IMG/VR virus record: IMGVR_UViG_3300036770_006296
Span: 1-64,000 of that record
DNA: 64,000 nucleotides
Direction: 5' to 3' (one strand)
Shown: in pieces, positions 16,456-64,000 of the stretch
How positions within the stretch are numbered: position 1 is the first letter of the stretch
How the letters are laid out: every line of letters starts with the position of its first letter
Made by a program: the position numbers and the translations under genes
The notes under the pieces: generated by a model
The model's input: only the letters and a program-made list of their open reading frames with translations
Database searches by the model: none
Told to the model about the DNA's origin: nothing

Positions 16456-17064
16456 TTGATGTATAAAATTAAAAACTTCAAGGATTTTTGCCAAATTAAT
16501 GAGTCTAATGAGGATCTTTTCTTCAGAAGACATTTGGGAAGTAATGCCTCTACTTATGAAGATAGAGCTAAGAACCACTATGATTTAGGCAGTAATCCCA
16601 CTGTCCTACAGAAAACTCGAGACTTTTTCCAAAAAATGGAAAATAGAATAAACAGAGCGGCAGAAATAGGAAAGCAACAGGTAAGGCAAAACAGAGCGAC
16701 AAGAACTCACGGAGGTCCAGACACAGGATTTGAGATACTCTTTGGGGCTTTATCAGTTGTGCCCAATGTATTAAAAAGAGTATTTGGTCCTACTAAATAT
16801 GAATTCACTAAAAAATCTCCTAGCGATGAGAAAGTGGATATAGAATTCATGAGGCACACAAATGAAGACTTTGCACAAAATGAACTTCCTGCTATAAAAA
16901 CGGAAGATCAATTAGCAGATCATATAGGTGATCTTTATAATAGAGGTGACGTAGTAATGGGACAAGTTCCTGTATTAGATGATATAGCTAGAAATAGGGT
17001 AAATCTCTATTATCAACATCAGGCAAATCCAGCTCAGCCTATATTCCAAACAAATAATGTATAA
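16456..17064 (+). CDS. Hypothetical protein with CTS-like N-terminus (putative internal head protein)
   Basis: Begins KIKNFKDFCQINES. Confidence 0.5.
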   Translation: MMYKIKNFKDFCQINESNEDLFFRRHLGSNASTYEDRAKNHYDLGSNPTVLQKTRDFFQKMENRINRAAEIGKQQVRQNRATRTHGGPDTGFEILFGALSVVPNVLKRVFGPTKYEFTKKSPSDEKVDIEFMRHTNEDFAQNELPAIKTEDQLADHIGDLYNRGDVVMGQVPVLDDIARNRVNLYYQHQANPAQPIFQTNNV

Positions 17065-17067
17065 AAA

Positions 17068-17913
17068 ATGAAAAAATTCTCTTCAGCAGTAGAAAAAAAG
17101 AAGCAAGAACTAAAAGAAAGCCAAGTAGTTAATGAAAGAAACATGTACCTTGAGTTCTCTAAAAAATATCACAAAAAACATGGGGTTTCAGGACCTTTCG
17201 ATAAAAAATTCCAAGGAGATAAAAAAGCTCAGGAAGAATACATGGAAGGCCTATCTAAAGCTTGGAGTGATTATAAAAAAGAGAAGGGTATAAAACCTAA
17301 ATCTACTGGATCAAAATTTGACTTTGCTAAAAAGAAAATAAATGAGTCTAAAGCTCTTGAAATGGCTAAGAGCATGATAGGTGACGGAGGAGATCCTAAT
17401 TATCATTTCGTAACAATGTGTGACGACTTCTATTTTGAAAAAGGCGGGGAAATGATCAGATACAGTAAAGACATGATGTCCGCTCCACTTAAAGTGAAAA
17501 CCACTCCAGATTTAGGAGCTTACACTTTTGGGCCTTTTGCTAATTTAGATGAGTCTAAAATGTTTGCAGCAAGTATAGAATTAGACGAGATCAATGGTCC
17601 TAGAATGGTAACAATCGAAGACAGAAAAACCGGAGACGTCTATTGTAAATATTTAACTTGTAAGATGCAGCCAGTCTGGAACGAGATAGAGGAAGAAGAA
17701 ATAGAGGACGAGGAAGAACTTGAAGATCCAAATTCTGGGTATACTTACGGAGAGGAGCATGATGGTCACCCGGAGGAAACAGAAGACAGCTACGACGATG
17801 AAGATGAGGATGAAGATGATGAGTACGCTGCTACTATTCCTCAAGGGGATGACGATGAGGTCGAAGATGAAATTGAAGACGACGAAGACGAGGACGAATA
17901 CGACGAGGAATAA
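17068..17913 (+). CDS. Hypothetical protein with basic N-terminus and very acidic C-terminal tail (scaffold/core-like)
   Basis: LKES and INES sites, and a D/E-dominated C-terminal region of about 75 aa. Confidence 0.45.
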   Translation: MKKFSSAVEKKKQELKESQVVNERNMYLEFSKKYHKKHGVSGPFDKKFQGDKKAQEEYMEGLSKAWSDYKKEKGIKPKSTGSKFDFAKKKINESKALEMAKSMIGDGGDPNYHFVTMCDDFYFEKGGEMIRYSKDMMSAPLKVKTTPDLGAYTFGPFANLDESKMFAASIELDEINGPRMVTIEDRKTGDVYCKYLTCKMQPVWNEIEEEEIEDEEELEDPNSGYTYGEEHDGHPEETEDSYDDEDEDEDDEYAATIPQGDDDEVEDEIEDDEDEDEYDEE

Positions 17914-17918
17914 TAAAA

Positions 17919-18362
17919 ATGTTTGGCCCTATACAAAGTACCGCACTTTATCCGGTTTTACAACACTACACAGGATGTAAGATACATTCAATCTCACCAG
18001 ATGGGGATGATTTTTCATTTAGAACATTTCTAGGGGAAAGAGGAATACTTACTGAGGATACTACCGGAAATTGGAACATTACTATAGGAAAAGAGCTTGT
18101 ATACACGATCGAAAAGGATATCTTTAAGGTATTGATTAAGCCAGATAAAAAAAGCTCTTTAGAAGACTATATAGACATATTAAATGACTTAAATAACAAT
18201 CCAGACGTAAGCTATAGATCCAGGATTTTGGTAGCAAATATCATGAAATTTTTAGAGGAATATATAATAAGTTCTGATTTTGTCCCAAAGAAAAATTTAA
18301 GGATAGGACATCTTTTGATTTGTAATTTAAAAGGTAGAAAAATTATTAATTGTTTAAACTAA
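17919..18362 (+). CDS. Hypothetical protein
   Basis: 147-aa ORF in a tight operon arrangement. Confidence 0.5.
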   Translation: MFGPIQSTALYPVLQHYTGCKIHSISPDGDDFSFRTFLGERGILTEDTTGNWNITIGKELVYTIEKDIFKVLIKPDKKSSLEDYIDILNDLNNNPDVSYRSRILVANIMKFLEEYIISSDFVPKKNLRIGHLLICNLKGRKIINCLN

Positions 18363-20365
18363 TGGCTGGAATAAAATATTTAACGGACATATACGAAAAA
18401 AAAGGAAAGTCCTTTATTGAAAGCCTTTTCAATAAAAATTTAACTGTAACGGAAAATCTAGACGGTCCTTCTTTTTCTTTTGAAAGAGATTTTACTGGCG
18501 ATAACATATCTTTCTATAAAAAGGATCAAGATAATCCTATAACCAAGGTGGATAGGATATTAATGAGATATTACGAAAAGCCCATAAGCTATATAGAATC
18601 TCTATCTCTTGAAATCACAGATCAACTTCCTAAGGGATGGAGATTCGGAATGGTTTACTTTCCTAACAAAAAGCCAGTCAGAATTGAATACGATAGGATA
18701 CCAAAGAATCATCTTGTTTTAACACATGTTGTTGTTAGGGATGAATTTGGTGATATCATTAAAAATTTACAGGATAGGAATGAGCTCGATGAATGGGCGG
18801 ACAAGCTAGGAGTTGAAAGATCACCTATTATATTCCAAGGTAAACTTGATAGGGATCAAAAGATAGCTATAATGGATTTCCTTTCCACCCCATTAGCAGA
18901 TCTTAAAAATAAATTCCAGACCTCTAGTTTTAGTAACTATCTAATTTCAATCTTAAATAAAAAAGTAGAAAGAACAACACTTGGTAAGGATTTACAAGGT
19001 GAGATAGATTCCCTAGTTTTTAGATTCGAGGATGAAGACGGAAAAGAGGAAACTGTTTTAGCAAAAATGGTTGACCCTATTTTTCATGAGATAAACAGAA
19101 GCAGAAAAGTTACTCAAACATCTTATTTTCCTAGTGATGTTTATTCTTTGTGTCTTATAGATGTAATGAATTTTATACTAGAGACAGGAGTAGAAAACTT
19201 TATGGCTGAAGGCAATGATCCAGAGGAAAGATACATCAGTTTTGTTTTTGATGTATTTAAGAAGTTTGTATACGAGGAGGGTGAGAAATATGTAGGTGCA
19301 GATTTTCAAAAACCAGAATACTTGAAAACCGAAGGATTTGAAATAAATAAGGATTTAATAACTGACGAAGAAATTTTAAAGTCTATAGAAGACGACGAAG
19401 TTTATATAGACATTCTACAAATGATCCTTAACTCTTTTAGAAAGCTTAAAAGAAAACCACATGGATTTTTTACAGAGGGGCTAATCCAGCAATTTAATAT
19501 GCTAGTTGAAGATATTGCTAGCTATATAAACGCCAAAAAGAAAGATTTAGTTGAAGAGTCTTTAGGAGTTCCCAGCTTTGTTTGGTTTAAAAAAGTCGGT
19601 AGTAAATTTAATCCGATAATGAGTGACGAGGATGAAATAGACGAACTAGAAGAAATCATAGAAGGTTCTTCTTCTGGAGATGTTCTACCTCTTAATGAAT
19701 CTGAAATCCCAGAGACTATAACTGAAGACGAGAAGAAAGAAGACGCTTCAGAATTTTTCTCATTTAAGGATTTTAAAAAGGTAGTAGCTACACACAAAGA
19801 AAAAAAGAAGATAAAGATATTAAACGAGAATAGCCAGAAGGTAAATATTGTAATAGGTAAATTTCAGCCATTTAACAATGGGCATTTAAAAATGTGTACA
19901 AGATTAAAGAAGGAAAACAATTTACCGGTATTTCTATGTGTAGTACATCCTGGAAGTGAGCCAGGATCTAAATATCCATTCTCTGAGGATTTAATAAAAA
20001 AATCTATAGGTGCTTTAACATCAGAGAACAACAAACTTTTTGCTGGATATGAAATAATTCCGTCCAACCTTTTGGAGGATGCTCTAAATGCAGTAGTAAA
20101 ACATGCTAATCCTGCTTCTATATGTATAGGGGAAAGGGATTTTGAAAATATGATTCTTCAAAGAGAATGGGTAAGAAATAAATATGATTTAGAAGGAGGA
20201 GATATAGAAATATACAAAACACCGCAATGGTCAAATAATAATGATATTAGAACCTATATAAAAGATGGGGATTTCCAGCAATTTAAAAGTAAAGTCCCTA
20301 AATCTGTAGCGGTTCTTTTCAATGAATTTACTAAACAAATAAACGGATCCGAGAAGGATATATAA
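18350..20365 (+). CDS. Fusion of an RNA-ligase-like nucleotidyltransferase fold (degenerate) and a HIGH-superfamily cytidyltransferase-like domain
   Basis: N-terminal VTENLDG in the position of ligase motif I (K-x-D-G), and later IDSLVFRF/LAKMVD. C-terminal IVIGKFQPFNNGH resembles GRFQPxHxGH. Confidence 0.6.
   Translation: MFKLMAGIKYLTDIYEKKGKSFIESLFNKNLTVTENLDGPSFSFERDFTGDNISFYKKDQDNPITKVDRILMRYYEKPISYIESLSLEITDQLPKGWRFGMVYFPNKKPVRIEYDRIPKNHLVLTHVVVRDEFGDIIKNLQDRNELDEWADKLGVERSPIIFQGKLDRDQKIAIMDFLSTPLADLKNKFQTSSFSNYLISILNKKVERTTLGKDLQGEIDSLVFRFEDEDGKEETVLAKMVDPIFHEINRSRKVTQTSYFPSDVYSLCLIDVMNFILETGVENFMAEGNDPEERYISFVFDVFKKFVYEEGEKYVGADFQKPEYLKTEGFEINKDLITDEEILKSIEDDEVYIDILQMILNSFRKLKRKPHGFFTEGLIQQFNMLVEDIASYINAKKKDLVEESLGVPSFVWFKKVGSKFNPIMSDEDEIDELEEIIEGSSSGDVLPLNESEIPETITEDEKKEDASEFFSFKDFKKVVATHKEKKKIKILNENSQKVNIVIGKFQPFNNGHLKMCTRLKKENNLPVFLCVVHPGSEPGSKYPFSEDLIKKSIGALTSENNKLFAGYEIIPSNLLEDALNAVVKHANPASICIGERDFENMILQREWVRNKYDLEGGDIEIYKTPQWSNNNDIRTYIKDGDFQQFKSKVPKSVAVLFNEFTKQINGSEKDI
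20357..20365 (+). promoter_or_regulatory. Putative late promoter GATATATAA overlapping the upstream stop codon
   Basis: The motif ends in the TAA of the preceding gene and precedes the peptidase gene. Confidence 0.55.
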
Positions 20366-20382
20366 GTTAATTAAAAAGATGA

Positions 20383-21243
20383 ATGAAAAGAATATTATCC
20401 TTTAATGACTTTGCAATTTTTGAATATAACACTTTTAACTACACTCCAGGAGATAAGTTAAATGAAGCTATATACCTAGACGAAAGAGAGAAAAGACCAG
20501 TAGACGAAGCGGCACTCAAGAAAATGAAAGCCTGCGTGTTTTTCTTAAACGGATCTTATCCGTTTTTTTCATCAATGCTATCTAGATTGATAATCAGAGA
20601 AAACAGAAATCTTAGATTTAAAACAATGGCAACTGACGGTGTTAGTATACACTATGATCCTGATTTTGTAAATGAGCACAGCGATGCAGAGATAATGTGG
20701 GTAATAGCACATGAGGTTTTACATAATACTCTACTTCACTTCCTAAGATGCCCTAAAGATAAAACTAAAGCGGGTGTATGGAATGTTGCAGCAGATTATG
20801 CACTTAACCAGGTATTAACTCCGATAGACCCAGGAACAATAAACACCGCTAAACCTGAACCTGTATCTAAGGGAGGAGTAGGAAAAATGGTGAAGGGTTC
20901 TTTATATCCAGGATGCGGGCACGTTTCTTACGATCGTGAGTTTGTTAACAGAAGTGCAGAATGGATATACGAAAAACTTTTAGCTAATGGATATGTTCCT
21001 GAGCCAGGTGAAGATACACCACCACCCCCACCACCCCCACCACCTCCACAGGATCCTGTAGTTGGTGATATCATATATGATAAAGATAATGATTCTTATG
21101 GTATAATTAAATCTATAGACGATTCTTCAGGCGAGCTTGAGTATGATCCTATACCTAAAAATAAGGTTAAAGAATACTTACAAAGAAAAGCTAAGGGTGA
21201 GAATATATTGGGAGACGATATAGAAAAAGAATTAGACTTCTAA
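20383..21243 (+). CDS. DUF2201-N-like HExxH metallopeptidase (stand-alone N-half)
   Basis: TMATDG..IHYDPDFV, VIAHEVLHNTLLH and WNVAADYALNQ, then a poly-Pro linker and a short SH3/KOW-like C-terminus. CTS-like N-terminus MKRILSFNDF. Confidence 0.8.
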   Translation: MKRILSFNDFAIFEYNTFNYTPGDKLNEAIYLDEREKRPVDEAALKKMKACVFFLNGSYPFFSSMLSRLIIRENRNLRFKTMATDGVSIHYDPDFVNEHSDAEIMWVIAHEVLHNTLLHFLRCPKDKTKAGVWNVAADYALNQVLTPIDPGTINTAKPEPVSKGGVGKMVKGSLYPGCGHVSYDREFVNRSAEWIYEKLLANGYVPEPGEDTPPPPPPPPPPQDPVVGDIIYDKDNDSYGIIKSIDDSSGELEYDPIPKNKVKEYLQRKAKGENILGDDIEKELDF

Positions 21244-21256
21244 TTTAATACGTTCT

Positions 21257-22240
21257 ATGAAAGCTAAGATAACTGACGTTAAAATACAAAAACTCCAGGA
21301 AGATGGAGGAGGGGGAGGAGGAAAGGGCCCAAGGAATCCTAAAAATGTAGAAGTTTGGCCAGGAGATGTTAATGATGTACCGGATAGGGACGAAGATGGA
21401 AACATCAAAGGAGATGACGTAGAAGGAGATTTTAAAAGATATTCCGGACCTAAAACAGATCCTGGATATAATCCAGGAGAAGTACTTAGACCTGGAGAAT
21501 TAGGGGATGTTGGAGATGGTGGAAATATAGACCCAGATAAGATAGCTGAGGAATGGGATGATATAACTAGAATAGCAACCACGGGAGGAAGTGCTCAACC
21601 ACCTCCTTCTATAAGAAGAGCTTTAACTAAACTAAAAGAGCCTGTTATTGACTGGAGAGCTGAGTTGGATAAATTTATAGATCAGGCAATATCCAAATCT
21701 AAGTACACATTGCCGGTTAGAAGATTTTTAGGAGCTGGGAAAGCACAGTATGGATATAAGAAATATAAAGAGGATTTTCAAAATATAGTTATTGCTATAG
21801 ATACATCCGGTTCTATTATTGATCCTTTATTAAAACAATTTATTTCAGAGGTCATTAAAATAACCGAAATATACAAACCCGATGAAACGACAATAATATA
21901 TTGTAGCGACAATATAGATAATATAGATACATTCGGTGTGGGTGAAGAGCCAGATTTAAATAAGATAGCATCAACTGGAGGAAACTATGAAGGATTCCAT
22001 CCACCTTTTAAATGGGTACAAAAAAATATGATTGACGAGGGAAAAACACCTTCGGTTTTTATTTATTTTACTGATGGATATGCAGATTTTCCACCACCCG
22101 AATATTATGATATAGAGAATTATTCAGATAGGTGTATTTGGGTACTCATTTCTTTTAATGATGAACCATTTCCTAGACCCGTTCCTTTTGGTGAAAGAAT
22201 AGATATAGTTTTAGCCAATAATAACGTAAAAAGAATTTAA
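21257..22240 (+). CDS. VWA-domain protein (DUF2201 C-half-like), copy A
   Basis: IDWRAEL, MIDAS motif AIDTSGSI, and TGGN...IYFTDG. Confidence 0.8.
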   Translation: MKAKITDVKIQKLQEDGGGGGGKGPRNPKNVEVWPGDVNDVPDRDEDGNIKGDDVEGDFKRYSGPKTDPGYNPGEVLRPGELGDVGDGGNIDPDKIAEEWDDITRIATTGGSAQPPPSIRRALTKLKEPVIDWRAELDKFIDQAISKSKYTLPVRRFLGAGKAQYGYKKYKEDFQNIVIAIDTSGSIIDPLLKQFISEVIKITEIYKPDETTIIYCSDNIDNIDTFGVGEEPDLNKIASTGGNYEGFHPPFKWVQKNMIDEGKTPSVFIYFTDGYADFPPPEYYDIENYSDRCIWVLISFNDEPFPRPVPFGERIDIVLANNNVKRI

Positions 22241-22243
22241 TCT

Positions 22244-23251
22244 ATGAAAGCAAAAATAACAGGCGTAAGAATTCAGCAAATGAAAGAATCCGGTGGTGGT
22301 GGTGGGGGAGGAGACGTAGAGGGGGACGACTTCGGTATCAGAAATCCTGAAAATGTCGACGAGTGGAAAGACGATGTTCCTGATGGGGATACTCCTGAAA
22401 GAGACAAAGATGGTAAAATAAAAGAGGAGGATTCCGAGTTCAAAAGATCTGATAGATCCGGAGGTGGTGGAGGTCCAGCTCCTGACGGATACAATCCTGG
22501 TGAAGTTCTTAGACCTGGGGAGTTGGGGGATCTTGGTGGAGACAGTGGACTTAACGGAGAAGCATTAGCTGAAGAATGGGAAGATATTACTAGAATAGCT
22601 GCAGCAGCGGGTAACGTTCCAGCATCTATAAAAAGAGCACTGACCAAAGTTAAAAGACCTGTTATTGATTGGAAGGCTGAATTAGCTAAGTATATAGACG
22701 AGGCAATAGCTAAATCTAAATATACATTACCAGCTAGAAGATTTTTAGGAGCGGGAAAAGCACAATATGGATATAAGAAATACAAAGAGGATTTCGAAAG
22801 CGTGGTTGTTGCAATAGATACTTCCGGATCTATCACTAGAGAAATGATAGAACAATTTTTAGGGGAGGTTATGAATATAACACAAGCATATACCCCTAAG
22901 AAAACCATTATATTATACTGCGACACCCAAGTTTACGAGCCGGATATATTAGAGCCAGGAGACACTCCTGATTTTAATAAAATAGCCGGAGGTGGTGGAA
23001 CATATTTTTGGCCTCCATTCAAATGGGTAGAAAGAAATTTAATAGAAGAAGGCGAAAAACCGACAGTATTTATATACTTTACTGACGGTGAAGCAAACTT
23101 CCCGTCTGCGGATGACTATGAGATTTCTCAATATGAAAATAGATGTATTTGGGTATTTCTCACATTTAATGATGAACCCTATCCAAACCCGCAACCTTTT
23201 GGCGAGAGAATAGACATAGTACTTGCCAATAAGAATGTAAAAAGAATATAA
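22244..23251 (+). CDS. VWA-domain protein (DUF2201 C-half-like), copy B; tandem paralog
   Basis: AIDTSGSI, GGGGT.F and IYFTDG; long near-identical blocks shared with copy A (e.g. RRFLGAGKAQYGYKKYKEDF, YNPGEVLRPGELGD). Confidence 0.8.
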   Translation: MKAKITGVRIQQMKESGGGGGGGDVEGDDFGIRNPENVDEWKDDVPDGDTPERDKDGKIKEEDSEFKRSDRSGGGGGPAPDGYNPGEVLRPGELGDLGGDSGLNGEALAEEWEDITRIAAAAGNVPASIKRALTKVKRPVIDWKAELAKYIDEAIAKSKYTLPARRFLGAGKAQYGYKKYKEDFESVVVAIDTSGSITREMIEQFLGEVMNITQAYTPKKTIILYCDTQVYEPDILEPGDTPDFNKIAGGGGTYFWPPFKWVERNLIEEGEKPTVFIYFTDGEANFPSADDYEISQYENRCIWVFLTFNDEPYPNPQPFGERIDIVLANKNVKRI

Positions 23252-23257
23252 AAAGTA

Positions 23258-23266
23258 GATATATAA
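23258..23266 (+). promoter_or_regulatory. Putative late promoter GATATATAA
   Basis: Intergenic, before the AAA+ gene. Confidence 0.6.
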
Positions 23267-23284
23267 AGAAAATAAAAAAATAAA

Positions 23285-24889
23285 ATGGGCAAAAGAATTT
23301 ATAATTTTAACGAGTTTGTCAATGAATCCTATATGAGTGAGGGATTTTTCTCTGATTTGGGATCGAAAATATCATCATGGGCAAAAAGTTTATATAATGC
23401 AGTTAAGTCAGGATTAGTTAGATTGATATCATCAGGACCTAAGAAAGGAACCCCTAGGGTGGCATTGTTTGACGATAGCAAGAGTGATTCAATCTTAAAT
23501 CAGGTTAACAATTTCTACAAAGGTACTGAATTCTATAATATGAATAACCTTGAGATCCCTGAGACCCTTGAAGAAAGCTTCTTATGGGAAGATGCAGTTC
23601 CTTTAACTTATCCTATAGAAGACGACGTACCAAACTATTCTGAACAGGAGATAAAAGAGACTATTAAAAGAAACATGAGAGATATCTTTAGAATTGCAGA
23701 TGAAATGGAAGCAGCTAAAGAATCTGGAGCATCTGATGACGAGTTAGATGATATTTACAGAGGAATTCTAGATGTTAAACCAATATTCATATACGGAGCT
23801 CCAGGGATTGGTAAAACTCAAATAGTAGCCCAAGTTTGTGACGAATTAGGAAAAGAATTATACGGACATAAACTATCTTTAGTTAACGTAGATGGTGAGA
23901 ACGCAGAGCCTGTTGATTTTGCTGGGGTACCTAGTGTAGTAGATATTGAATCACCAAATGAAGAAAACCCAATTGGAAGAGGTGTTACCAGATCTAATAT
24001 TAATGTTGATATACTCCCTTATGATAACGGAAAAAATCAAAAAGGGGGAATCCTATTCATCGACGAGTTAAACCGTATGCCTAAAGAAGTTATTAAGATA
24101 TTTATGAAACTTGCTCAGTCCAGAAGAATCGGTAACAATTATAAGGTTCCTTCTAGATGGTATATCGTTGCAGCAGGTAACCGAAAAGAAGATGATAGAG
24201 GAAATATCGAAGAATTAGGTACTGCTCTTAGAGACAGATTCGAAGCTGTTAACTTTGTACCAACTATAAAAGGATTTAGAGGATATATCGAGGGAAGCAG
24301 ATACAAAGACGTTGTTCTTCCAGAGCTTCTAGATTTCTTAGAATTCCAGCCAGTATACTTCCATAATTTGGATCCGGCTCTTAAGAAAACAAAATATCCA
24401 ACTCCTAGGGCTTGGGTAGATGCTTCGAACTCTTTAAGAAGAGTTATTAGAGAATTGGAAGCTAAAGGAGTTACAAAGATTCCGGAAGATGTGATAAGAA
24501 AAGAATTCTCTAAAAATGTTGGATATGATGCAACATCAGCTTTCTTGAATTTCTACAAGATTGCTAAAGATATTCCAGTAAAAGATCTTATTCTACCTTA
24601 CACGGATCCCGATAAAGCTCCAGTTCCTGCGGATAAAGGGGATAGACCAGATTATACACACGCTTTATTTGGAGCGGTTATGAGAAAAAGCACAGAGATG
24701 CAATTAACACCTAAAGAGGTTTGTAATTATGCTAAATGGTTAGAAAGAATTGATAAAGAGGAAGAAGGAGCAGCACAGATTACAACTTTCTTTAAGCTTC
24801 ATCCAGAATTGGCAAAAGATCCTGCAATGTACTCTTGCTTAGGACCTTTGGCTGATAAATGGGGAGCTAAAGTTGGACAAGAGTTCTAA
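23285..24889 (+). CDS. MoxR-type AAA+ ATPase, locus 1
   Basis: Walker A GAPGIGKT, Walker B ILFIDE, AAGNR, ALRDRF and PTPRAW. CTS-like N-terminus IYNFNEFVNES. Confidence 0.85.
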   Translation: MGKRIYNFNEFVNESYMSEGFFSDLGSKISSWAKSLYNAVKSGLVRLISSGPKKGTPRVALFDDSKSDSILNQVNNFYKGTEFYNMNNLEIPETLEESFLWEDAVPLTYPIEDDVPNYSEQEIKETIKRNMRDIFRIADEMEAAKESGASDDELDDIYRGILDVKPIFIYGAPGIGKTQIVAQVCDELGKELYGHKLSLVNVDGENAEPVDFAGVPSVVDIESPNEENPIGRGVTRSNINVDILPYDNGKNQKGGILFIDELNRMPKEVIKIFMKLAQSRRIGNNYKVPSRWYIVAAGNRKEDDRGNIEELGTALRDRFEAVNFVPTIKGFRGYIEGSRYKDVVLPELLDFLEFQPVYFHNLDPALKKTKYPTPRAWVDASNSLRRVIRELEAKGVTKIPEDVIRKEFSKNVGYDATSAFLNFYKIAKDIPVKDLILPYTDPDKAPVPADKGDRPDYTHALFGAVMRKSTEMQLTPKEVCNYAKWLERIDKEEEGAAQITTFFKLHPELAKDPAMYSCLGPLADKWGAKVGQEF

Positions 24890-25164: not shown

Positions 25165-25701
25165 ATGAAACATATAAAATTATTTGAGCATTTTTTAATG
25201 GAAGAGGATGGATTCGGTAGAGACTTCTTTGTTAAAAGGAAGGACGGAAAAGTTTCCAAATACTATTTTAAAATAGAAGGTGAGGAAGAAAATCTAGGAT
25301 TCATTATCAATATAGGCAAACTTTCACGAGGATCTTCTATAGATGAAGCAGAAAATAGCTATTGTGTTGTATCGGCAGAACCAATTAAAATCGGAATACT
25401 TGATGACTATTTAGTAAATGATACAGATTATAAGTCTAGAGAGGATGACGATTTTAATCTCACTAGATCAGAGTTTATGAGATTTTATAGAATCTTAAGT
25501 GAAACAATAAAAGACTATTTACAAAATAATCCTAAGGTCTCTAAAATCTATGACGAGATTACAATGAATCTAAATGTAGATTTCTCTGAGTATAAAGACA
25601 GGGTAGAAACATTAATGGGAGAATGGAGCTACGAAAAATGGAGCGTTCAGGAAGGACCGGATGATGAAACTTTAATTTATACTAGAAGGGACCATGACTA
25701 A
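25165..25701 (+). CDS. Hypothetical protein with CTS-like N-terminus
   Basis: Begins MKHIKLFEHFLMEE. Confidence 0.5.
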   Translation: MKHIKLFEHFLMEEDGFGRDFFVKRKDGKVSKYYFKIEGEEENLGFIINIGKLSRGSSIDEAENSYCVVSAEPIKIGILDDYLVNDTDYKSREDDDFNLTRSEFMRFYRILSETIKDYLQNNPKVSKIYDEITMNLNVDFSEYKDRVETLMGEWSYEKWSVQEGPDDETLIYTRRDHD

Positions 25702-26506: not shown

Positions 26507-26541
26507 AATCCCCGATGATATATAATCTATCGGGGATTTTT
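26507..26541 (+). terminator. Intrinsic terminator hairpin with GATATATAA in its loop
   Basis: AATCCCCGAT (26507-26516) / ATCGGGGATT (26529-26538) is a perfect 10-bp inverted repeat followed by a T-run. Confidence 0.7.
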
Positions 26542-27968: not shown

Positions 27969-27978
27969 TATATACTAC

Positions 27979-28866: not shown

Positions 28867-28885
28867 CTATTATATATTCCTTTTT

Positions 28886-47728: not shown

Positions 47729-47737
47729 GATATATAA
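47729..47737 (+). promoter_or_regulatory. Putative late promoter GATATATAA
   Basis: Intergenic, before AAA+ gene 2. Confidence 0.6.
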
Positions 47738-50308: not shown

Positions 50309-50310
50309 TT

Positions 50311-54710: not shown

Positions 54711-55237
54711 AAACCTATTCTTTAGTATTAAAGATAGGATTAGTAGGCATTTTAACAGTCCCATTAAGGCTATATTTTGAGTCTAATGAGATAAAAAGGA
54801 TAAATTATAATGTAAACCATGGGAGCGTTATTTTAAACGCTCCTACGGCTGTTAAAATGTTTAATTCTATCGAGGTATACTCCAAAAAATATGATATACC
54901 TTTAAAGTATGCGTTGGGTATTGCCTATGCAGAAACAAGATATCAAGGACCTTTTCATTGGTCTTATAACCCTCAGCAAAAATCTTCCGCAGGAGCATTA
55001 GGTCCTATGCAAATAATGCCAGGCACCGCTAATTATGTATGGGGAAGGCAAATACCGAAGGATCAATTGATTTCTGATATCGATTTTAATGTTGAAACTT
55101 CAATGAAGGTTTTGAGAAGACTACACGACAAGTATGGCAATTGGAAGCTAGTTTTTGGGTGCTATAATACTGGAAGACCTTGCATCAATGGTTATGCTGA
55201 AAAAGTTTATAATTTTAATCCAAAATCTAAAAAATGA
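54707..55237 (+). CDS. Soluble lytic transglycosylase (SLT) domain protein with an N-terminal hydrophobic anchor
   Basis: IAYAETRY (catalytic Glu), SSAGALGPMQIMPGTA and CYNTG. Confidence 0.85.
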   Translation: MKTYSLVLKIGLVGILTVPLRLYFESNEIKRINYNVNHGSVILNAPTAVKMFNSIEVYSKKYDIPLKYALGIAYAETRYQGPFHWSYNPQQKSSAGALGPMQIMPGTANYVWGRQIPKDQLISDIDFNVETSMKVLRRLHDKYGNWKLVFGCYNTGRPCINGYAEKVYNFNPKSKK

Positions 55238-57238: not shown

Positions 57239-57775
57239 TTAATAACCACCTCCGAAGATGTGAGTTTTGTAGTATGATCTATCTTTCTTAATGGCTGGGT
57301 GTTGTTTTCCACCTTCCCATTTTGATTTTTTAAGCATTTCTCTAATTTTTGGATCATTTTTAATATCTTCAGCAACTTTAGAAGTTAGTTCTTCTTGTCT
57401 GTCGATAAGGGTCGGATCTTTCTTGATCATTTCTTTAACTCTCTGCTCAGCTTCAGTTTTAATCCATTGCTTATTAGTTCTCCAACCTTCTAGCCAAGTA
57501 CCTCCCAAAGCTAATGTAACAAGTCCTGCAATTACGCTAGGGAAAAGAATAAAGAAATCTGTGATTGTTAAAAGTCCATCAGATCCTAAAAATTCATAAA
57601 CTCTTCCTTCGTGCATTCCTTCTTCTTCCAAGTCAGATTGCACCATTCTTAAAAGTTCTTCCGGATCCACTCCCATTCTAGCAGCAGCGTCTCTCACAAA
57701 GTTTTTAGATACTGGTTTTAATCCTTCGTTCATTCCTTTTCCTAGGAAATTTTCGAATTGTTCTATATTTATCAT
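57239..57775 (-). CDS. CTS-tagged protein with a hydrophobic segment (minus strand)
   Basis: MINIEQFENFL...MNEG leader and TM-like FFILFPSVIAGLVTLALGG; GATATATAG lies on the minus strand at 57795-57803. Confidence 0.6.
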   Translation of the reverse strand: MINIEQFENFLGKGMNEGLKPVSKNFVRDAAARMGVDPEELLRMVQSDLEEEGMHEGRVYEFLGSDGLLTITDFFILFPSVIAGLVTLALGGTWLEGWRTNKQWIKTEAEQRVKEMIKKDPTLIDRQEELTSKVAEDIKNDPKIREMLKKSKWEGGKQHPAIKKDRSYYKTHIFGGGY

Positions 57776-57857
57776 CTTGTTATGCTTTTTATAACTATAT
57801 ATCTCTTCCTAGGTAAGATTTTAATGTATGGATATATAAGGTAAATAATATATAGTT

Positions 57858-58014: not shown

Positions 58015-58521
58015 ATGAGTTCAATAAAAAGATTTGAACAGTTTCTTAATGAAGAAAAATGGATCAAAGGCGCTATAGAACATCCAGGAGCTCTTAGAAG
58101 ACATTTTCATAAGAAGGAGGGAGAAAAGATCACTAAAACTGAAATAGGTGATGAAATTGCCGATCTTATGAGAAAAGATATGGACAAGAAAAAACCTGGT
58201 GCTCAGTTAGGTAAAAGAGATGCTACTCTTTACAAAAGACTTCAATTAGCAAAAACCCTCAGAGGTATGAATGAGGATCACGATGAGATGGATAATTATA
58301 TGTTCTTTGCAAATGTTTCTAATATAAAAAGAATGTGTGAGGAGATATTACAAATGGATCCTTCACAAGTTGATTCGCTTCTTAGTGACGGACACGGATG
58401 GGCTACTGATCACATAGCAACTTCTAAAGATGATGTTGAAGAAGTTTATGGATTTTTAAAATCCTCAATGGAATTACATCATGATGAAGAGGGAATGATC
58501 TCCGATGGAGAGGAATGTTAA
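58015..58521 (+). CDS. Hypothetical protein with CTS-like N-terminus
   Basis: MSSIKRFEQFLNEE leader; basic KWIKGAIEHPGALRR domain; internal MNE site; acidic C-domain. Confidence 0.55.
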   Translation: MSSIKRFEQFLNEEKWIKGAIEHPGALRRHFHKKEGEKITKTEIGDEIADLMRKDMDKKKPGAQLGKRDATLYKRLQLAKTLRGMNEDHDEMDNYMFFANVSNIKRMCEEILQMDPSQVDSLLSDGHGWATDHIATSKDDVEEVYGFLKSSMELHHDEEGMISDGEEC

Positions 58522-58537: not shown

Positions 58538-60694
58538 ATGAAATACCTTTCTTTATTTGATGATTATAAATTATCCGAAGAAGAATCCTACCTGTTTGAT
58601 AATGATTCATTGTTTGAGTCTAAAATAAACCAGATGATGTCACTTAGACAAAATGGGTGTGCAGCTGGTATGGATCTTAATGAATTTAAGTCAGCTTTTA
58701 GAAGAGATTCTTTACTTGAGAATAGGGGATATGAAGAATCTGAGGCCTTATTAGAAAAAGCCCATAGCGTATATGAACTAGGAATGCTACAAGAATCTAA
58801 ATCACATTGGTTTGATGATGATAAACCCCTTATGTATGAACACTCCAAGGGGGTTATTTCTTATCTAGAATTTGAAGGTAATATACTTTTATTTAAAGAG
58901 GGTGAAGCTTTTGCAATCACTGAAAAATCGCTAAGGATGCTTAAAGATAACGATCAATCAATCAATGAGGATCTTTTTAATGAAGTGATAGGAGGTAAAT
59001 TATATGAGTATTCATTTAGCGATTTCTGTGGAGATGTGTGGAGTGGAGTAAAATCAGGAGCTAAATGGGTAGACAGAAACATAGTGCAGCCTGCTAAAAA
59101 AGTTGTTACTGAATATGTAATAGATCCTTTAAAACAATTGTGGGATAATCTAACTGATGGCGCTAAAAAACTTTACCAATTTGCCAAGAAAGTTATGAAT
59201 GCTATAGCATCTTTTGTTTCTGAGAATTGGCAAGACATTCTATTCTATGTTTCTGTCGCTTTACAGGTTATTGCCGGTATAATAGCTTTTATTCCTGCAG
59301 CTGGTCAAGTCGCAGGACCTGTTCTGTTGATAATAGCAGGAGCTATACAAATAGGAACCGGAGCGTATGATATTTACGAAGGTGTAAAAATAACGAGAGA
59401 GTGCCCAACTGATCCTATAAAAAAAGCTGCACCGGAATTTATAAAAGGTGGAGCTAAACTTCTGGGAGGTGGTGTTAGTTTGTTATTAGGTATACACGAT
59501 GTATCTACTAGTGCTAAAGCAGCAATACCAGGAGCAGCAGCTACCAGTACTGCAGTTGCAGTTCCTGCAAAGGCTTGGGTTAAAACAACTACTGCAGGAT
59601 TAAGCAAGGCTGGAGCAGCTGTGGGTATGTTCGAAACCCTTATTAAATTTTTAATTGATTCTGCTGGAACTGCTGCTAGTAAAGCCGTTACCAAAAAAGT
59701 AGCAACTACCGGCGGAAAATATGTTGCACAGAAAACTTCACTACTAGCTGGTGAAGCCCTAACTAAAGCAGGAGCTGAGATACTGGGAAAAAAATTAGGG
59801 GATAAAGCTAATGAATCTGCAATTCCTATGTTATGTATAGCTGGACAATACGCTTTAGGGTGGTTATGGGACATTATATTATCTGCAGTTTCTGGAATAG
59901 GTAAATTAATTAATGGCATACTGGATTTACCAACTAGAACAGTTAAAGCCATAGACAATTTTAATAGAGAATATTCCGATAGTGCATTTGGATGGATAGT
60001 AGGAGGAGCATTAAAGCTTTTTGTGAAACCAGTTGCTAAAGTTCTCTCCTGGTTTTGTGAAAATAAAATAAAACCCTTAGTTAAGCCCGTTACTGACTGG
60101 ATGATTGGATTAGGTAAACATAACAAATCCATAAAGCAATCAGTGGAGGGTAACGCATCTTTAAAAGCTGCAGTTAGCGGAGGAAAAATACCTCAACCTA
60201 AGGGAGGAATACCACAAGAAAAAGTTACTGTAACAGAAAAAGATAAAAGTAATCTTGCTAAAATAATGGCGTCTGAATCTGGGAAAGCTTCAGATAAATC
60301 CATAGCTAAATCAAGTGGATTTTACAATGAAAAATTCAAGAAAATTCAATCGGATATACAATCGAAGATTAAGAAACAACAGGAAAAACTTTATAAAGAT
60401 AAATTCCCAGGCATTTTAAAGAATGAAGCTAAAGGTAAATGGCACACCCTAAAGGATGGAACTTTATGTTTCGAATTTAAATCAGATTCTGCAAAAGGCT
60501 CTGTAATACTTTATAATAACGGCAGGTATATGGTTAGCGACGGTCCTAATAAAGGGGCCAAAGGAAACTATACAGCAAAAAATAATATCGATATACAACC
60601 ACCTAAAGGAGGATTTAAGAATCCAAAGAAGGAAGGCAAGAAGAACGAATCTAGAAACTATATAAGAACTTTCGAATCCTTCTCTTTCTCCTAA
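58538..60694 (+). CDS. Large CTS-tagged protein with hydrophobic/amphipathic helices, paralog A (ejection/pore-forming candidate)
   Basis: MKYLSLFDD leader (ATG at 58538); W-spaced amphipathic helices; TM-like ILFYVSVALQVIAGIIAFIPAAGQVAGPVLLIIAG. Confidence 0.5.
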   Translation: MKYLSLFDDYKLSEEESYLFDNDSLFESKINQMMSLRQNGCAAGMDLNEFKSAFRRDSLLENRGYEESEALLEKAHSVYELGMLQESKSHWFDDDKPLMYEHSKGVISYLEFEGNILLFKEGEAFAITEKSLRMLKDNDQSINEDLFNEVIGGKLYEYSFSDFCGDVWSGVKSGAKWVDRNIVQPAKKVVTEYVIDPLKQLWDNLTDGAKKLYQFAKKVMNAIASFVSENWQDILFYVSVALQVIAGIIAFIPAAGQVAGPVLLIIAGAIQIGTGAYDIYEGVKITRECPTDPIKKAAPEFIKGGAKLLGGGVSLLLGIHDVSTSAKAAIPGAAATSTAVAVPAKAWVKTTTAGLSKAGAAVGMFETLIKFLIDSAGTAASKAVTKKVATTGGKYVAQKTSLLAGEALTKAGAEILGKKLGDKANESAIPMLCIAGQYALGWLWDIILSAVSGIGKLINGILDLPTRTVKAIDNFNREYSDSAFGWIVGGALKLFVKPVAKVLSWFCENKIKPLVKPVTDWMIGLGKHNKSIKQSVEGNASLKAAVSGGKIPQPKGGIPQEKVTVTEKDKSNLAKIMASESGKASDKSIAKSSGFYNEKFKKIQSDIQSKIKKQQEKLYKDKFPGILKNEAKGKWHTLKDGTLCFEFKSDSAKGSVILYNNGRYMVSDGPNKGAKGNYTAKNNIDIQPPKGGFKNPKKEGKKNESRNYIRTFESFSFS

Positions 60695-60720
60695 GGAATA
60701 TATAAAGTAAAATGATAAGA

Positions 60721-62823
60721 ATGAAATACCTATCACTATTTGATGATTTTGACCAAATTGAAGAATCATACTCCTTTGATAACGATTCCTTATTAGAATC
60801 AAAATTGAATCAGATGAGTTCGCTAAAAGAAAGCTGCATGGCAGCATGGGACTTTGGAACATTTAGTGATTTTTTCAATGGATTCATTAATGAGAGCGTA
60901 TCTGATATCGAAAGAGAATTACTTTTAGAAAAAGCATATTACACATATGAGTTAGGCGTATTATACGAGCACAATAAAGATTGGTTTAATAGCAAGGATA
61001 ATATCTACTATCTGGAAGACAATTCTAATGATGTACCAAGGGCTATTCTTTTTAAAGATAATAGATTACATATAATATCCGGTGAAACTATATCCAAATT
61101 AAAAGAGGGATTAGATACTCTTAATGAGGGATTTTTTGGGGATTTAATAGACGGAGCAGCCAATCTAATAGGAAAAGGAGTAAAGGCAGTTAAAGGAGCT
61201 GTTAAAAAATACGTAGTGGAACCCGTCAAGAAAGCAGCTGCTTATGTTGGTGACAAGGTATCTAAAGCTTGGGATGCTTTATCAAGTGGAGCTAAAGCCG
61301 TTTGGGAATTTGGTAAAAAAATAGCTTCTGCAGTTGCTGCTTTTGTTAGCGAGGATCCAATAAATGCAATAGCAATAGGATTAATGATTATATCTGGTAT
61401 AATCTCTTTTATACCTGCTGCAGGTACAGTTATTGGACCAGTCCTCATGGTGATAGCAGGAGTTTTACAGCTATATACAGGAGGAAGAGATTTAGTAAAA
61501 GCTAGTAAAGAGGTGGGATCAGCAGAAAAGGTTGTTGATATATTAAAAGGAGGCACCAAAATTATATTTGGGTCTGCTAGCTTATTGTTAGGAATAAAAG
61601 ATATTGTAACATCAGCTGCATCTGCCCTTCCCGGAATGGGAGCAACCGGCGTTGCTATAAAATCATCAGTTACTAGCTGGGCAACAAACTTCAGTAAAAC
61701 TGCTTTTGGCGCACCTGCAAGTAAAGGAATAGGAGCAGCTTTAGGATGTTCCGCTTGGATTTCTGAATTTTTCTCTACCCTCTGTCTTAATGCTCCCTTT
61801 ATGAAAAAATTTGTAGATGTGGCAGCAGATGGTTCTAAGGTTATAAATAAAAAATGGCTGGATGTAGGAACCAAAATTGCTAATGCAGGAGCAGGAAAGG
61901 GTGTAGAAGCCGTAACTGCTACAGATAAAAAACAAAATGCAAGTCTAGATTTAGACTCATATAACAATCATTTGGACGAAGATAAAGGCGGGGGATCATG
62001 GGGATTCGGAGAACTTGTAGTAAACTTCCTAGCCTATGTGGGAAAAGCATGTTTCTCGTGGTTATTTAAAGCTATTACCGGTGCTTTATCAGGGATAGGC
62101 AAGCTTATAAATGGAATAATGGATCTTCCCTCGAGAATAACAAAGGGAATAGATTCATTTAGAGAAAAATATAAATCATCCTTCATAGGAGGTATTCTAT
62201 CAGGGGCTCTTGCAACATTTGTAAGACCTTTTTCTAGCGTTGCATCTAAAGTGATAGATGGATATGTTAAACCAATAGTTAAACCGGTTACAGGTTGGAT
62301 GATAGATCTTGGTAAAAAAGAGGCATCTATTTCAGCTAAAATAAAAGCTAATCCAGTACTGGCAAAACCTCCTATACCAGGAGTAAAAGACCCAGGTAAA
62401 GTAACTATCCCACAGAAAAAAGTTGAGATATCACCTAAAGATCAGGCAGCTATAAAGAAAATCGGAGTTACTGGAGTAAAAACAATGGTTAAATCTGGAG
62501 GTGGATCGGAAAAAATGGTGGAAAAGATCAACAAAGCTCAGGATGAATTCAAAAAGAAATTTCCTGGGGTTTCTAAAGAAAAAGGATCCTGGGGACAAAG
62601 TCCTAGCGGTAAAGCAACTTACACCATAAAATCAAAAGAAGCAGAAGGCTCAGTTACCCTGTTCAATGACGGTAAATACACAGTTGTAACAGGTCCCAAC
62701 AAAAAAGCTAGAGGGGAATTTAAAGCCGACAAGGGAATAAAATTGATGGAGCCTAAGGATGGATGGAAGAAAAAGAATGAATCTAGAAGATATGTTCTAC
62801 CTATAAATTCTTTCTTGGGTTGA
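60721..62823 (+). CDS. Large CTS-tagged protein with hydrophobic/amphipathic helices, paralog B
   Basis: MKYLSLFDD leader; IAIGLMIISGIISFIPAAGTVIGPVLMVIAG; colinear similarity to paralog A; preceded by GAATATATAA (60696-60705). Confidence 0.5.
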   Translation: MKYLSLFDDFDQIEESYSFDNDSLLESKLNQMSSLKESCMAAWDFGTFSDFFNGFINESVSDIERELLLEKAYYTYELGVLYEHNKDWFNSKDNIYYLEDNSNDVPRAILFKDNRLHIISGETISKLKEGLDTLNEGFFGDLIDGAANLIGKGVKAVKGAVKKYVVEPVKKAAAYVGDKVSKAWDALSSGAKAVWEFGKKIASAVAAFVSEDPINAIAIGLMIISGIISFIPAAGTVIGPVLMVIAGVLQLYTGGRDLVKASKEVGSAEKVVDILKGGTKIIFGSASLLLGIKDIVTSAASALPGMGATGVAIKSSVTSWATNFSKTAFGAPASKGIGAALGCSAWISEFFSTLCLNAPFMKKFVDVAADGSKVINKKWLDVGTKIANAGAGKGVEAVTATDKKQNASLDLDSYNNHLDEDKGGGSWGFGELVVNFLAYVGKACFSWLFKAITGALSGIGKLINGIMDLPSRITKGIDSFREKYKSSFIGGILSGALATFVRPFSSVASKVIDGYVKPIVKPVTGWMIDLGKKEASISAKIKANPVLAKPPIPGVKDPGKVTIPQKKVEISPKDQAAIKKIGVTGVKTMVKSGGGSEKMVEKINKAQDEFKKKFPGVSKEKGSWGQSPSGKATYTIKSKEAEGSVTLFNDGKYTVVTGPNKKARGEFKADKGIKLMEPKDGWKKKNESRRYVLPINSFLG

Positions 62824-62840
62824 AAACAATTTATTAATTA

Positions 62841-62849
62841 GATATATAA
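62841..62849 (+). promoter_or_regulatory. Putative late promoter GATATATAA
   Basis: Intergenic, before the ATG at 62866. Confidence 0.6.
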
Positions 62850-62865
62850 AACATAAAAAAACAAA

Positions 62866-64000
62866 ATGAAAAAACAAGTATTATCTTTCAACGAATTTAT
62901 ATTCGAAGCTTATAATTCAGTATCTAGAATAATGGAAGGAGAAGTATCCGGAGCTGAAGAATTGATAGAAGCTATAAGTAAATTGGACAAAGCCGGATTA
63001 TCAGCAGAGGCCAAGAAACAGTTAGGCAATTTATCAGGAATAGCTAAAGCAGTTCAAACTACTGAAAATCCAAATGCCGAGAAACATCTAGGAGAAGGCT
63101 TACTAGGGGTTTTGGATAATCTAACAACAACCGGTGTTGAAATAACAGGTATCGTATCAAAGGTTAATACTATTACCTATGACAATCTAATTGCTGGGCA
63201 TGTTTTACTGGAGGATGATAAAAGAGTTAATCTATTGGATTTCTTATATCTTATTAATAGTGAAAACTGTTACAGTAAAATCAATATAGGAGCTTTTGAG
63301 GAAGATGGAAAATTAGAATGGAGCAAGATTCAAACTGATAGAAGATTTACCTTAGCAATGGAGGATTACAGGAAAACAGCAGGTGGCAAAAGATTGAAAC
63401 CTGGAGCAGCTAAATTTGGCAACTTTATTGGATCTTTCTTTTCAAGAGACCCTAATGTTGAGAAAAAAACTAAAGATAGTGTTTACTTAACAGGATCTGG
63501 ATTATTAGGAAATGAAGTTATAACAGGTATCGAAAGCGGAGTTATAAAGACAGAAAAATCTGTTTCCACTTATAAAGATATGGCTCTTGGAGGTAAAAGT
63601 AAAAAAGGAAGAGATAAAAAAGGGTTTTCTAATATTGGAGGAGATAAGAGCGTAATTACTGGATATAATATTGCTCTTCCTTTAGGTGCTGAACTAACGC
63701 CCAATCAAAAATTCCCAACTAAAGGAGCTACTAAAGTATCTAAGAATCCTAAGGCTTACTTTAGTCTTGTTCTTTATACTATGGGACAATCAGAAAAATC
63801 AAATAGAGAAATACCATTTAGTGATTTAGTACTCATAGAAAAAATGAGACCTACTGGCGAAACTATCGTTGAATATACGCTTGATATGTACAACAATGAC
63901 GAAAATGGTAAGCCTCTATTATTTGCTGTGGATTCATCAGTACTTACTGCAGCAGGGAAGGACAACATTAAAGCTGCCATAGAGCAATTTTATGCAATTG
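62866..64000 (+). CDS. CTS-tagged protein running off the right edge, with the probable start of an OmpA-like peptidoglycan-binding domain
   Basis: Read by hand as open from the ATG at 62866 (MKKQVLSFNEFIFEA...) to the window end (...LLFAVDSSVLTAAGKDNIKAAIEQF); not in the ORF track because it has no stop in the window. Confidence 0.6.
   Translation, partial: MKKQVLSFNEFIFEAYNSVSRIMEGEVSGAEELIEAISKLDKAGLSAEAKKQLGNLSGIAKAVQTTENPNAEKHLGEGLLGVLDNLTTTGVEITGIVSKVNTITYDNLIAGHVLLEDDKRVNLLDFLYLINSENCYSKINIGAFEEDGKLEWSKIQTDRRFTLAMEDYRKTAGGKRLKPGAAKFGNFIGSFFSRDPNVEKKTKDSVYLTGSGLLGNEVITGIESGVIKTEKSVSTYKDMALGGKSKKGRDKKGFSNIGGDKSVITGYNIALPLGAELTPNQKFPTKGATKVSKNPKAYFSLVLYTMGQSEKSNREIPFSDLVLIEKMRPTGETIVEYTLDMYNNDENGKPLLFAVDSSVLTAAGKDNIKAAIEQFYAI

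Follow-up and report, generated by a model that had tools for sequence, protein, structure and literature searches.

In bacteriophage T4, a capsid-targeting sequence (CTS) marks diverse internal proteins of the head (PMC3012670, PMC9026906). Some 10-20 residues long, this N-terminal peptide is carried by the otherwise unrelated proteins IPI, IPII, IPIII and Alt and removed by the gp21 protease. The first 10 residues of IPIII suffice for packaging, residues 4 and 7 acting in targeting and residues 8 and 10 in processing, and an Asp at position 10 blocks cleavage whilst targeting is kept; the peptide is also sufficient to target foreign proteins into the head (PMC9026906). Giant phages likewise process dozens of head proteins after Glu (PMC5694885). 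A leader of comparable kind is described here in a window of 64,000 nucleotides (the whole stretch of DNA analysed), which spans positions 1-64,000 of the 206,617-bp metagenomic contig IMGVR_UViG_3300036770_006296 (JGI 3300036770 Ga0310126_0000076). This leader, with the consensus h-x-x-F-x-x-F-[ILV]-N-E↓S (h, hydrophobic; x, any residue; the arrow, the predicted cut), is probably a T4-type capsid-targeting propeptide, a reading to which a probability of about 75% can be given. No description of this leader type was found in the literature searched.

The leader shares with the T4 CTS its general form, a short N-terminal peptide on otherwise unrelated proteins, and the spacing of its key residues (aromatic, aromatic at +3, aliphatic at +4 and Glu at +6), which F-x-x-F-[ILV]-N-E in the window matches. 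Both end in an (I/L)-x-E site and are encoded by late genes scattered outside the head module, and homologues of gp20, gp21 and gp23 build the head of related phages. The T4 sequences themselves start MKTYQEFIAE (ipII and ipIII) or MKTFKEF...ITE (ipI). By comparison with M-K-T-Y-Q-E-F-I-A-E, however, the window consensus M-K-x-I-x-x-F-x-x-F-I-N-E-S is about three residues longer in front, a second site often follows downstream, and the cargo includes large enzymes. At least about 42 genes are tagged here, as opposed to only a few core and internal proteins in the T4 list (PMC5694885), a roughly tenfold difference; moreover, the source phage lies in a jumbo-phage clade, with a probable Bacteroidota host, and its leader is known from sequence alone. 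The resemblance to T4 is thus one of key-residue spacing rather than of overall sequence, since a 12-column matrix trained on the window leaders stays below threshold on the T4 internal proteins.

Two further systems are closely comparable. Sphingomonas (Sphingobacterium) phage PAU belongs to the same wider clade (with the 1166-aa structural protein, a gp23-type capsid protein and a Peptidase_S77 protease), processes its capsid protein and places one N-terminal leader, ending LNE↓A or S, on many unrelated small proteins. In contrast to the window, the PAU leader MK[TS][LI]xxL[YF]E(AKLNEA) has L-[YF]-E in place of F-x-x-F, and the PAU leader genes seen encode mostly small proteins and cluster round the head module. 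In phiKZ, 201phi2-1 and SPN3US, dozens of head-internal proteins are cut after Glu at a short motif by a gp21-related protease, with several sites per propeptide and with N-termini conserved between diverged paralogues (PMC5694885). These phages differ in that their propeptides are mostly longer than 100 residues and lack a common linear tag, the motif is A/S/G-x-E, and they form another clade (the chimalliviruses) with a T=27 capsid. What is new in the present case is a distinct, longer consensus in a jumbo-phage clade, borne by a set some ten times that of T4 and by scattered genes with late-type promoters, with enzyme machines amongst the cargo and with a code conserved across a very large uncultured clade.

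When the window is translated in six frames, the strict pattern [ILVM]..F..[FY][ILVCMA].E[SEQA] is matched eight times, and all eight matches fall no more than 12 residues past the ATG of a long plus-strand open reading frame (ORF), 5-21 codons after a stop. The original prediction, that about 20 proteins of the window share a T4-like leader, is borne out by 13 strong leaders and six variants, the latter shorter or with insertions but retaining the aromatic i/i+3 pair and an h-x-E site. Nineteen of its entries were upheld and one or two are doubtful: 52128 (MTFDEF) receives no support from the leader model, and a leader-like N-terminus at 34653 had been overlooked. The first entry has a strong leader, although its true start is the ATG at 16459 and not the TTG at 16456. 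Enzymes were also predicted amongst the tagged proteins; the AAA+ proteins (AAA_5 in 23285 and 47757) and the peptidases (DUF2201_N in 20383 and 49247) were recovered, whereas the 'LDT-like' and 'wHTH' assignments were not reproduced. The genes, named by the coordinate of their start codon, are given below with the upstream motif GATATATA or its variant AATATATA where one is present.

16459-17064, plus strand: strong leader, 201 aa; N-terminus MYKIKNFKDFCQINE↓S (leader at nt 16459-16503); no Pfam family; GATATATA at 16430-16437.
20383-21243, plus strand: strong leader, 286 aa; N-terminus MKRILSFNDFAIFE↓Y; DUF2201_N putative metallopeptidase (Pfam PF13203, 2.7e-18), paralogue of 49247; GATATATA at 20357-20364.
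23285-24889, plus strand: strong leader, 534 aa; N-terminus MGKRIYNFNEFVNE↓SY, second site YMSE↓G; MoxR-type AAA_5 ATPase (Pfam AAA_5 and AAA); GATATATA at 23258-23265.
25165-25701, plus strand: strong leader of the MKHIKLFE subtype, 178 aa; N-terminus MKHIKLFE↓HFLMEE; downstream of 23285 with no promoter of its own.
25694-26005, plus strand: strong leader, 103 aa; N-terminus MTNNILSYKEFINE↓S.
27979-28560, plus strand: variant leader, 193 aa; N-terminus MNHLFTFQQLFE↓K (an L-x-E site); AATATATA at 27967-27974.
28561-28866, minus strand: variant leader, 101 aa, GTG start; N-terminus (V)KKILSFKLFE↓D; AATATATA at 28871-28878, minus strand.
34653-35312, plus strand: leader-like N-terminus, doubtful member, 219 aa, dNMP/thymidylate-kinase-like (phrog_761, 4e-7); ...KKITNFKDFVKD (ITNFKDFVKD), with a matrix score of 16.8 and no Glu, hence no h-x-E site.
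36615-37097, plus strand: strong leader, 160 aa; N-terminus MRILRFVDFLNE↓SVYN; GATATATA at 36590-36597.
39331-40077, plus strand: strong leader, 248 aa; MILRLKDFVSE↓QE, then a low-complexity linker; GATATATA at 39318-39325.
42740-44287, plus strand: strong leader, 515 aa; MERKVLSFSQFLNE↓QE, then a Gly/Thr/Ser linker; phrog_3000; GATATATA at 42728-42735.
47757-49250, plus strand: strong leader, 497 aa; MSKRIKNFSDFVNE↓SY, second site KLDE↓G; MoxR-type AAA_5 ATPase; GATATATA at 47729-47736.
49247-50308, plus strand: strong leader, 353 aa; leader from residue 15, ...VITSFSNYVRFINE↓S; DUF2201_N metallopeptidase with PT repeats.
51251-52108, plus strand: variant leader, 285 aa; N-terminus MKNLVGFNLFE↓SY.
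52128-52574, plus strand: doubtful leader, 148 aa; MTFDEFKDK, no matrix support; DUF5856 (Pfam PF19174, 2.3e-16).
52626-53633, plus strand: strong leader, 335 aa; MKIMNFSQFINE↓SY; true start the ATG at 52626, not the TTG at 52617.
57239-57775, minus strand: variant leader, 178 aa; N-terminus MINIEQFENFLGKGMNE↓G; GATATATA at 57796-57803, minus strand.
58015-58521, plus strand: strong leader, 168 aa; MSSIKRFEQFLNE↓E; behind a 51-aa ORF at 57858 that itself follows GATATATA at 57831-57838.
58538-60694, plus strand: variant leader, 718 aa; N-terminus MKYLSLFDDYKLSE↓EE; paralogue of 60721.
60721-62823, plus strand: variant leader, 700 aa; N-terminus MKYLSLFDDFDQIEE↓SY; AATATATA at 60697-60704.
62866-64000, plus strand: strong leader, 504 aa, ending at contig position 64380; MKKQVLSFNEFIFE↓AY; weak OmpA-like domain; GATATATA at 62841-62848.

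Apart from the bearers of AAA_5, DUF2201_N, DUF5856 and the OmpA-like domain, the tagged proteins belong to no Pfam family, 58015 giving a sub-threshold match. In many of them, a second h-x-E site follows 5-12 residues further downstream. In the protein encoded by 60721, another leader-like stretch, SDFFNGFINESV, is found internally, some 50 residues from the N-terminus (nt 60865-60900), which suggests a longer propeptide with several sites. The enzymes fall into two paralogous modules (20383-24889 and 47757-51249), each with a tagged DUF2201_N metallopeptidase, a tagged MoxR-type AAA_5 ATPase and untagged DUF2201/VWA-like proteins. Of the latter (21257, 22244 and 50311), the first two open with a conserved MKAKIT.. 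followed by a poly-Gly run.

The set extends well beyond the window. Contig positions 1-166,868 were stitched from overlapping pieces with 0 mismatches in the overlaps, and the leader model was scanned across the encoded proteins, as the original prediction had proposed. A position matrix trained on the N-termini reaches a score of at least 12 in 30 of 256 ORFs and in none of 36,513 internal 10-residue windows. Two of the 30 matches (1068 and 95151) were discarded as artefactual or doubtful, leaving 28 accepted, and 14 core-only variants, mostly MKHI[KR]LFE.F, were added. In total, about 42 of the 256 ORFs carry the leader and together encode 11,163 residues, with more than 20 leader genes lying beyond the window. 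They are dense at 16-72 kb and 119-156 kb of the contig and absent from 83-119 kb; one, at contig position 132,290, starts MIQHYEEFIAE.

Several observations indicate that the leader is a portable module under selection as protein: the bodies are unrelated, codons vary, orthologues and homologues keep the leader, insertions and deletions fall at its junction, and it is modelled as a detached helix. After removal of the first 25 residues, similarity is left in three pairs only (20383/49247, 23285/47757 and 58538/60721), so that, these pairs aside, the tagged proteins do not form a single paralogous family with similarity past the N-terminus. Orthologues in 13 related contigs retain the leader with conservative changes, including those of 39331 (L001-L013), and in the orthologues of 36615 the insertions and deletions fall exactly between the NE of the leader and the body. 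Full-length homologues of 47757, at 47-96% identity, have the h-x-x-F-x-x-[FY] N-terminus in 114 of 116 cases and, 15-40 residues from the start, a further x-[NSD]-E-[GSA] site in 103 of 116, and MoxR ATPases of unrelated phages align to this protein from about residue 105 only. The three paralogous pairs, together with the very uniform MKHIKLFE subtype, could be taken to mean that the leader is merely the inherited N-terminus of one expanded family or a shuffled module with no common function now. This is very improbable, as most bodies have no detectable similarity and the leader is held down to 47% body identity and across phages as distant as PAU and LR756500, which requires purifying selection on the peptide itself.

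A second possibility is that conservation acts at the level of the nucleotide sequence or mRNA, the leader being a translation-initiation or transcript-stability element tied to late promoters; it does indeed lie at the 5' end of late transcripts, near the promoter motif. Against this, synonymous codon choice is free for the conserved F, N, E, S and I residues (TTT/TTC, GAA/GAG, AAT/AAC and TCN/AGC), from which it follows that the leader is selected as a peptide, and the changes between orthologues are conservative in protein terms (I/V/L and F/Y). The distance from the ATG to the leader motif also varies by 1 to 17 codons, and leader genes inside operons keep the leader without a promoter of their own. 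Very little weight can therefore be placed on selection at this level.

In an AlphaFold2 (AF2) model of 36615 (mean pLDDT 71), the leader is a low-confidence helix of residues 6-13 that stands detached from a confident body. The model has no significant fold match in the PDB, and an identification of 36615 as an Alt-like ADP-ribosyltransferase, considered for its YRG motif, was dropped for this reason. The model also bears on the proposal that the leader is an inhibitory or assembly propeptide, which would hold the AAA+ proteins and metallopeptidases inactive, or oligomerised, until its removal and would have no packaging role. The h-x-E sites do imply removal, and several of the tagged proteins are enzymes. 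Yet the model of 36615 shows no contact between leader and body, the same 10-14 residues stand on more than 40 unrelated and mostly small bodies, for all of which one inhibitor is not to be expected, and the T4 equivalent suffices to carry foreign proteins into the head (PMC9026906). A purely inhibitory role is accordingly judged quite unlikely, and the reading as a capsid-targeting propeptide is retained.

The organization of head modules in relatives provides a link between leader and capsid. A gp21-family protease and a gp23-type capsid protein are present in PAU, PTm1, pT24, LR756500 and IMG/VR loci; Pfam recognises Portal_T4, Peptidase_S77 (the gp21 family) and Gp23 in one IMG/VR head module (L089), and Peptidase_S77 and Gp23 in PAU. 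In the L089 module, three leader genes (MKHVKTFDKFIAE.., MIKSFDAFKLNE.. and MKHIKLFEDFVNE..) come after the portal and protease genes, and the capsid gene is next; another three stand downstream of it, separated from it by a single leaderless gene. The arrangement is similar at further loci of this family and in LR756500, where leader genes lie in the interval from protease to capsid and just past the capsid gene, and in L086 a homologue of the doubtful member 52128 directly follows the capsid gene. Between 100,001 and 150,000 of PAU (L270), 15 proteins start MK[TS][LI]xxL[YF]E and several continue KLNE↓A or S. These include the annotated scaffold (gp152) and all three GenBank 'internal capsid proteins' of 100-150 kb (gp142, gp154 and gp199). 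The GenBank notes suggest that the PAU annotators recognised internal capsid proteins; no published description of the PAU leader set was found in the literature searched, where the GenBank notes alone mention these proteins.

The end of the leader has a counterpart in the capsid protein itself. Near their N-termini, the capsid proteins of the clade carry LINE↓AE or KLNE↓SF, and the boundary between propeptide and body, at one aligned position, reads LME↓NY in PAU, INE↓SY in PTm1, ILE↓SY in pT24 and LNE↓SVY or LNE↓NVY in LR756500-like phages. The pattern h-x-E-[SN]-(x)-Y is found at this boundary in 77 of 119 homologues, with LNESVY the commonest form (21). The 36615 junction FLNE↓SVYN contains an identical LNESVY, and the junctions of 23285, 47757 and 52626 are similar to INESY. 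As judged from these aligned residues, the leader end is a copy of the capsid maturation site of the clade. By N-terminal sequencing, trimming shortens the PAU capsid protein from 585 residues to 520 (PMC5646251), which places the trimming within one residue of Glu64↓Asn65.

These findings are also what separates docking on the prohead core from docking on some other late structure or location, such as the tail, the baseplate, the envelope, a phage-made compartment or a host target. Association with a late promoter does not by itself name the structure; 62866 has a weak OmpA-like peptidoglycan-binding domain, and an untagged SLT transglycosylase gene lies amongst the tagged genes. However, none of the baseplate, neck and hub proteins of the lineage whose N-termini were read bears a leader, whereas the leader genes of relatives sit inside the head module, in the interval between protease and capsid, the PAU scaffold and annotated internal capsid proteins bear the analogous leader, and the leader ends in the capsid maturation site. 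Nor do the leaders have the basic n-region and uninterrupted hydrophobic core of about 10-15 residues of Sec, Tat or lipoprotein signal peptides: they are acidic and amphipathic, with an acidic or polar residue every 2-3 positions, unlike the genuine signal peptides on neighbouring genes. Docking elsewhere than on the prohead is thus unlikely.

Expression class points in the same direction as gene position. The motif GATATATA has 15 exact copies in the window as against 7.0 expected, a number reached by 1 of 100 shuffles; 14 of the 15 are on the plus strand, and most lie 12-29 nt before a start codon. As had been predicted, tagged genes mostly follow a shared upstream motif: RATATATA occurs within 40 nt upstream of 25 of the 42 leader genes and of 18 of the 214 other ORFs (odds ratio 16, p = 1e-12), and the leader genes without it mostly follow another leader gene in the same orientation. 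Besides the copies in the gene list and those at 26517-26524, 40706-40713 and 52036-52043, two stand before structural genes.

4802-4809, plus strand: GATATATA upstream of the leaderless tail-fibre-like gene 4828-7596.
8583-8590, plus strand: GATATATA upstream of the leaderless 777-aa structural gene 8595-10928, followed by a tail-tube-like gene at 10925.

Since copies precede 4828 and 8595, GATATATA would drive virion structural genes too. The motif likewise precedes leaderless tail genes in a relative (L030), and motifs of GATATATA/AATATATA type precede head-module genes (portal, protease and capsid-adjacent) in distant relatives (L087, L089, L112 and LR756500). By position and association, GATATATA is probably a clade-wide late promoter, and by this motif the tagged genes fall into the late class together with the head genes. 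The small genes at contig 83,000-119,000 (L165-L168) lie behind another repeated motif (TTTCTACATTTG and TTAGCTAAGTAA types), with neither leader nor GATATATA, and this stretch is probably an early region read by the host RNA polymerase. Candidates for reading the GATATATA promoters are two sigma-70-family proteins, whose paralogous genes lie at contig 112,075-112,920 (L168; Pfam Sigma70_r2/r4) and 148,717-149,577 (L177) and whose best segment is 63% identical.

Residue spacing, gene position in relatives, the PAU leader set, mimicry of the capsid cleavage site and expression class thus all favour the T4-like reading first proposed. Under this reading, each tagged gene or small operon would be transcribed from a GATATATA late-type promoter, such that cargo is made alongside the head proteins. 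With hydrophobic residues at i, i+3, i+6 and i+7, the leader would fold into a short amphipathic helix and attach the newly made late protein to the scaffolding core while the prohead assembles. After closure of the shell, a gp21-family prohead protease would cut at the (I/L/V)-x-Glu site at the leader end, usually [ILV]-N-E↓S and sometimes L-F-E↓x, and so free the mature protein inside the head. The tagged set would then be a predicted internal head proteome of core or scaffold-like parts and proteins that leave with the DNA, counting about 20 members for the window and about 42 for 167 kb of the contig, including the two MoxR AAA+/DUF2201 metallopeptidase modules and the OmpA-like protein. 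We infer core binding, cleavage, packaging and ejection alike. That the tagged proteins are head-targeted is well supported by inference; that they are injected is a weaker claim, because some may be parts of the core or scaffold that are degraded and expelled, as are T4 gp22, gp67 and gp68 (PMC5694885).

A number of points weigh against this reading. The only experimental datum in the clade concerns processing of the PAU capsid protein and not of a leader-bearing protein (PMC5646251), and the mature length of this capsid protein, 520 residues, is one residue off a cut at Glu64↓Asn65. Not every member of the group has the trait: in the first 50 kb of the cultured relative PTm1, no leader was found. 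Portal, protease and capsid genes were not found in positions 1-166,868 of the 206.6-kb contig or in the roughly 56 kb that lie upstream in relatives; the protease of the source phage itself, not found in 167 kb, is predicted to be of T4 type from relatives and from the T4 gp13 neck gene of the lineage. Forty-odd cargo species, including ATPases of 500 residues and a kinase-like enzyme, are also much for one head, and the Glu is absent (34653) or displaced in some leaders.

Searches with capsid profiles gave no match from the source lineage among 80 of at least 487 loci (LR756500-like branch) or the best 120 of 3,186 proteins. A gene at 13038-14039 (minus strand) of L192, a relative of the contig region around 166 kb, was rejected as the capsid gene of a head module, its product of about 310 aa covering only the C-terminal half of gp23 at 25% identity in a variable region. 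This gp23-like protein sits amongst glycosyltransferase and sigma-like genes.

Public data contain more than 3,000 clusters of homologues of the clade's gp23-type capsid protein. That the whole jumbo/huge-phage clade loads dozens of proteins into the head by means of a single N-terminal code, readable from sequence, is a tentative proposal, for which the odds fall a little short of even. If true, the head load of the source phage would amount to at least 40 proteins, about 16% of its genes, with complete MoxR AAA+/VWA-like/metallopeptidase machines, and the 'cargo-ome' that uncultured phages inject could be listed directly from metagenomes. Internal head proteins are amongst the first phage products to enter the cell; T4 IPI*, for instance, is injected and inhibits a restriction enzyme of the host (PMC3012670). 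Their detection normally depends on a cultured phage and on proteomics of its virions. A sequence tag would thus point to candidates for early-acting effectors, here the tagged AAA+/peptidase modules and many small proteins of no known family. The T4 CTS is a packaging handle for foreign proteins, and the leader could be put to similar use in the engineering of these phages. Not only is the set unusually large relative to that of T4, but its genes, with late-type promoters, are also scattered among replication genes.

Judged by its gene content, the source is an uncultured jumbo phage of PAU/PTm1/LR756500-like type. Its lineage is placed with the jumbo phages PAU, PTm1/PTm5, pT24, MA9V-1/2 and MaF61, the Lak megaphages and the huge phage LR756500 on account of a shared 1166-aa structural protein, which is encoded directly upstream of the window start in relatives. 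No near-identical DNA match to the window was found amongst GenBank phages. The window has a G+C content of 34%, nearly all genes are on the plus strand, and the replication genes are of T4 type (a gp32-like single-stranded DNA-binding protein, primase, UvsY-like protein, gp41-like helicase and gp39-like topoisomerase), with the topoisomerase at most about 30% identical to that of any GenBank phage and about 29% identical to those of T4-like phages. The host is probably a member of the Bacteroidota, the hosts of the clade's cultured members. Start codons are preceded by A-rich sequence with no Shine-Dalgarno motif, which presumably also fits such a host. The host of PAU, a phage listed in the Félix d'Hérelle collection (PMC5646251), is reportedly a Sphingobacterium (White and Suttle 2013, as cited in PMC10537231).

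Relatives extend to 248 kb, and the contig is probably incomplete. In relatives, some 56 kb precede the window start and hold tail fibres, PhoH, baseplate genes, the gp13 neck gene and a sugar island of about 25 kb; this stretch has no match in four compared contig pieces of 109-157 kb. In L074, L075 and L077, this lipopolysaccharide-type island adjoins the baseplate block and encodes KDO-8-P synthase, SIS, epimerases, glycosyltransferases, methyltransferases and WbqC. Window and contig both open inside a tail-fibre-like gene (1-4784), which encodes 1,825 aa in relatives L030 and L045, so that the GTG start listed at 147 is not real. The untagged SLT lytic transglycosylase at 54707-55237 has an N-terminal hydrophobic segment, and an untagged endolysin-like protein is encoded behind GATATATA at contig 164,938-165,750, its N-terminus resembling, by eye, a peptidoglycan-binding domain. 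Lastly, an alternative-frame ORF of QEKMEN repeats at 49893-50240 lies within gene 49247, at a PT disordered repeat reported by Pfam, and is probably an artefact of the repeats rather than a gene.

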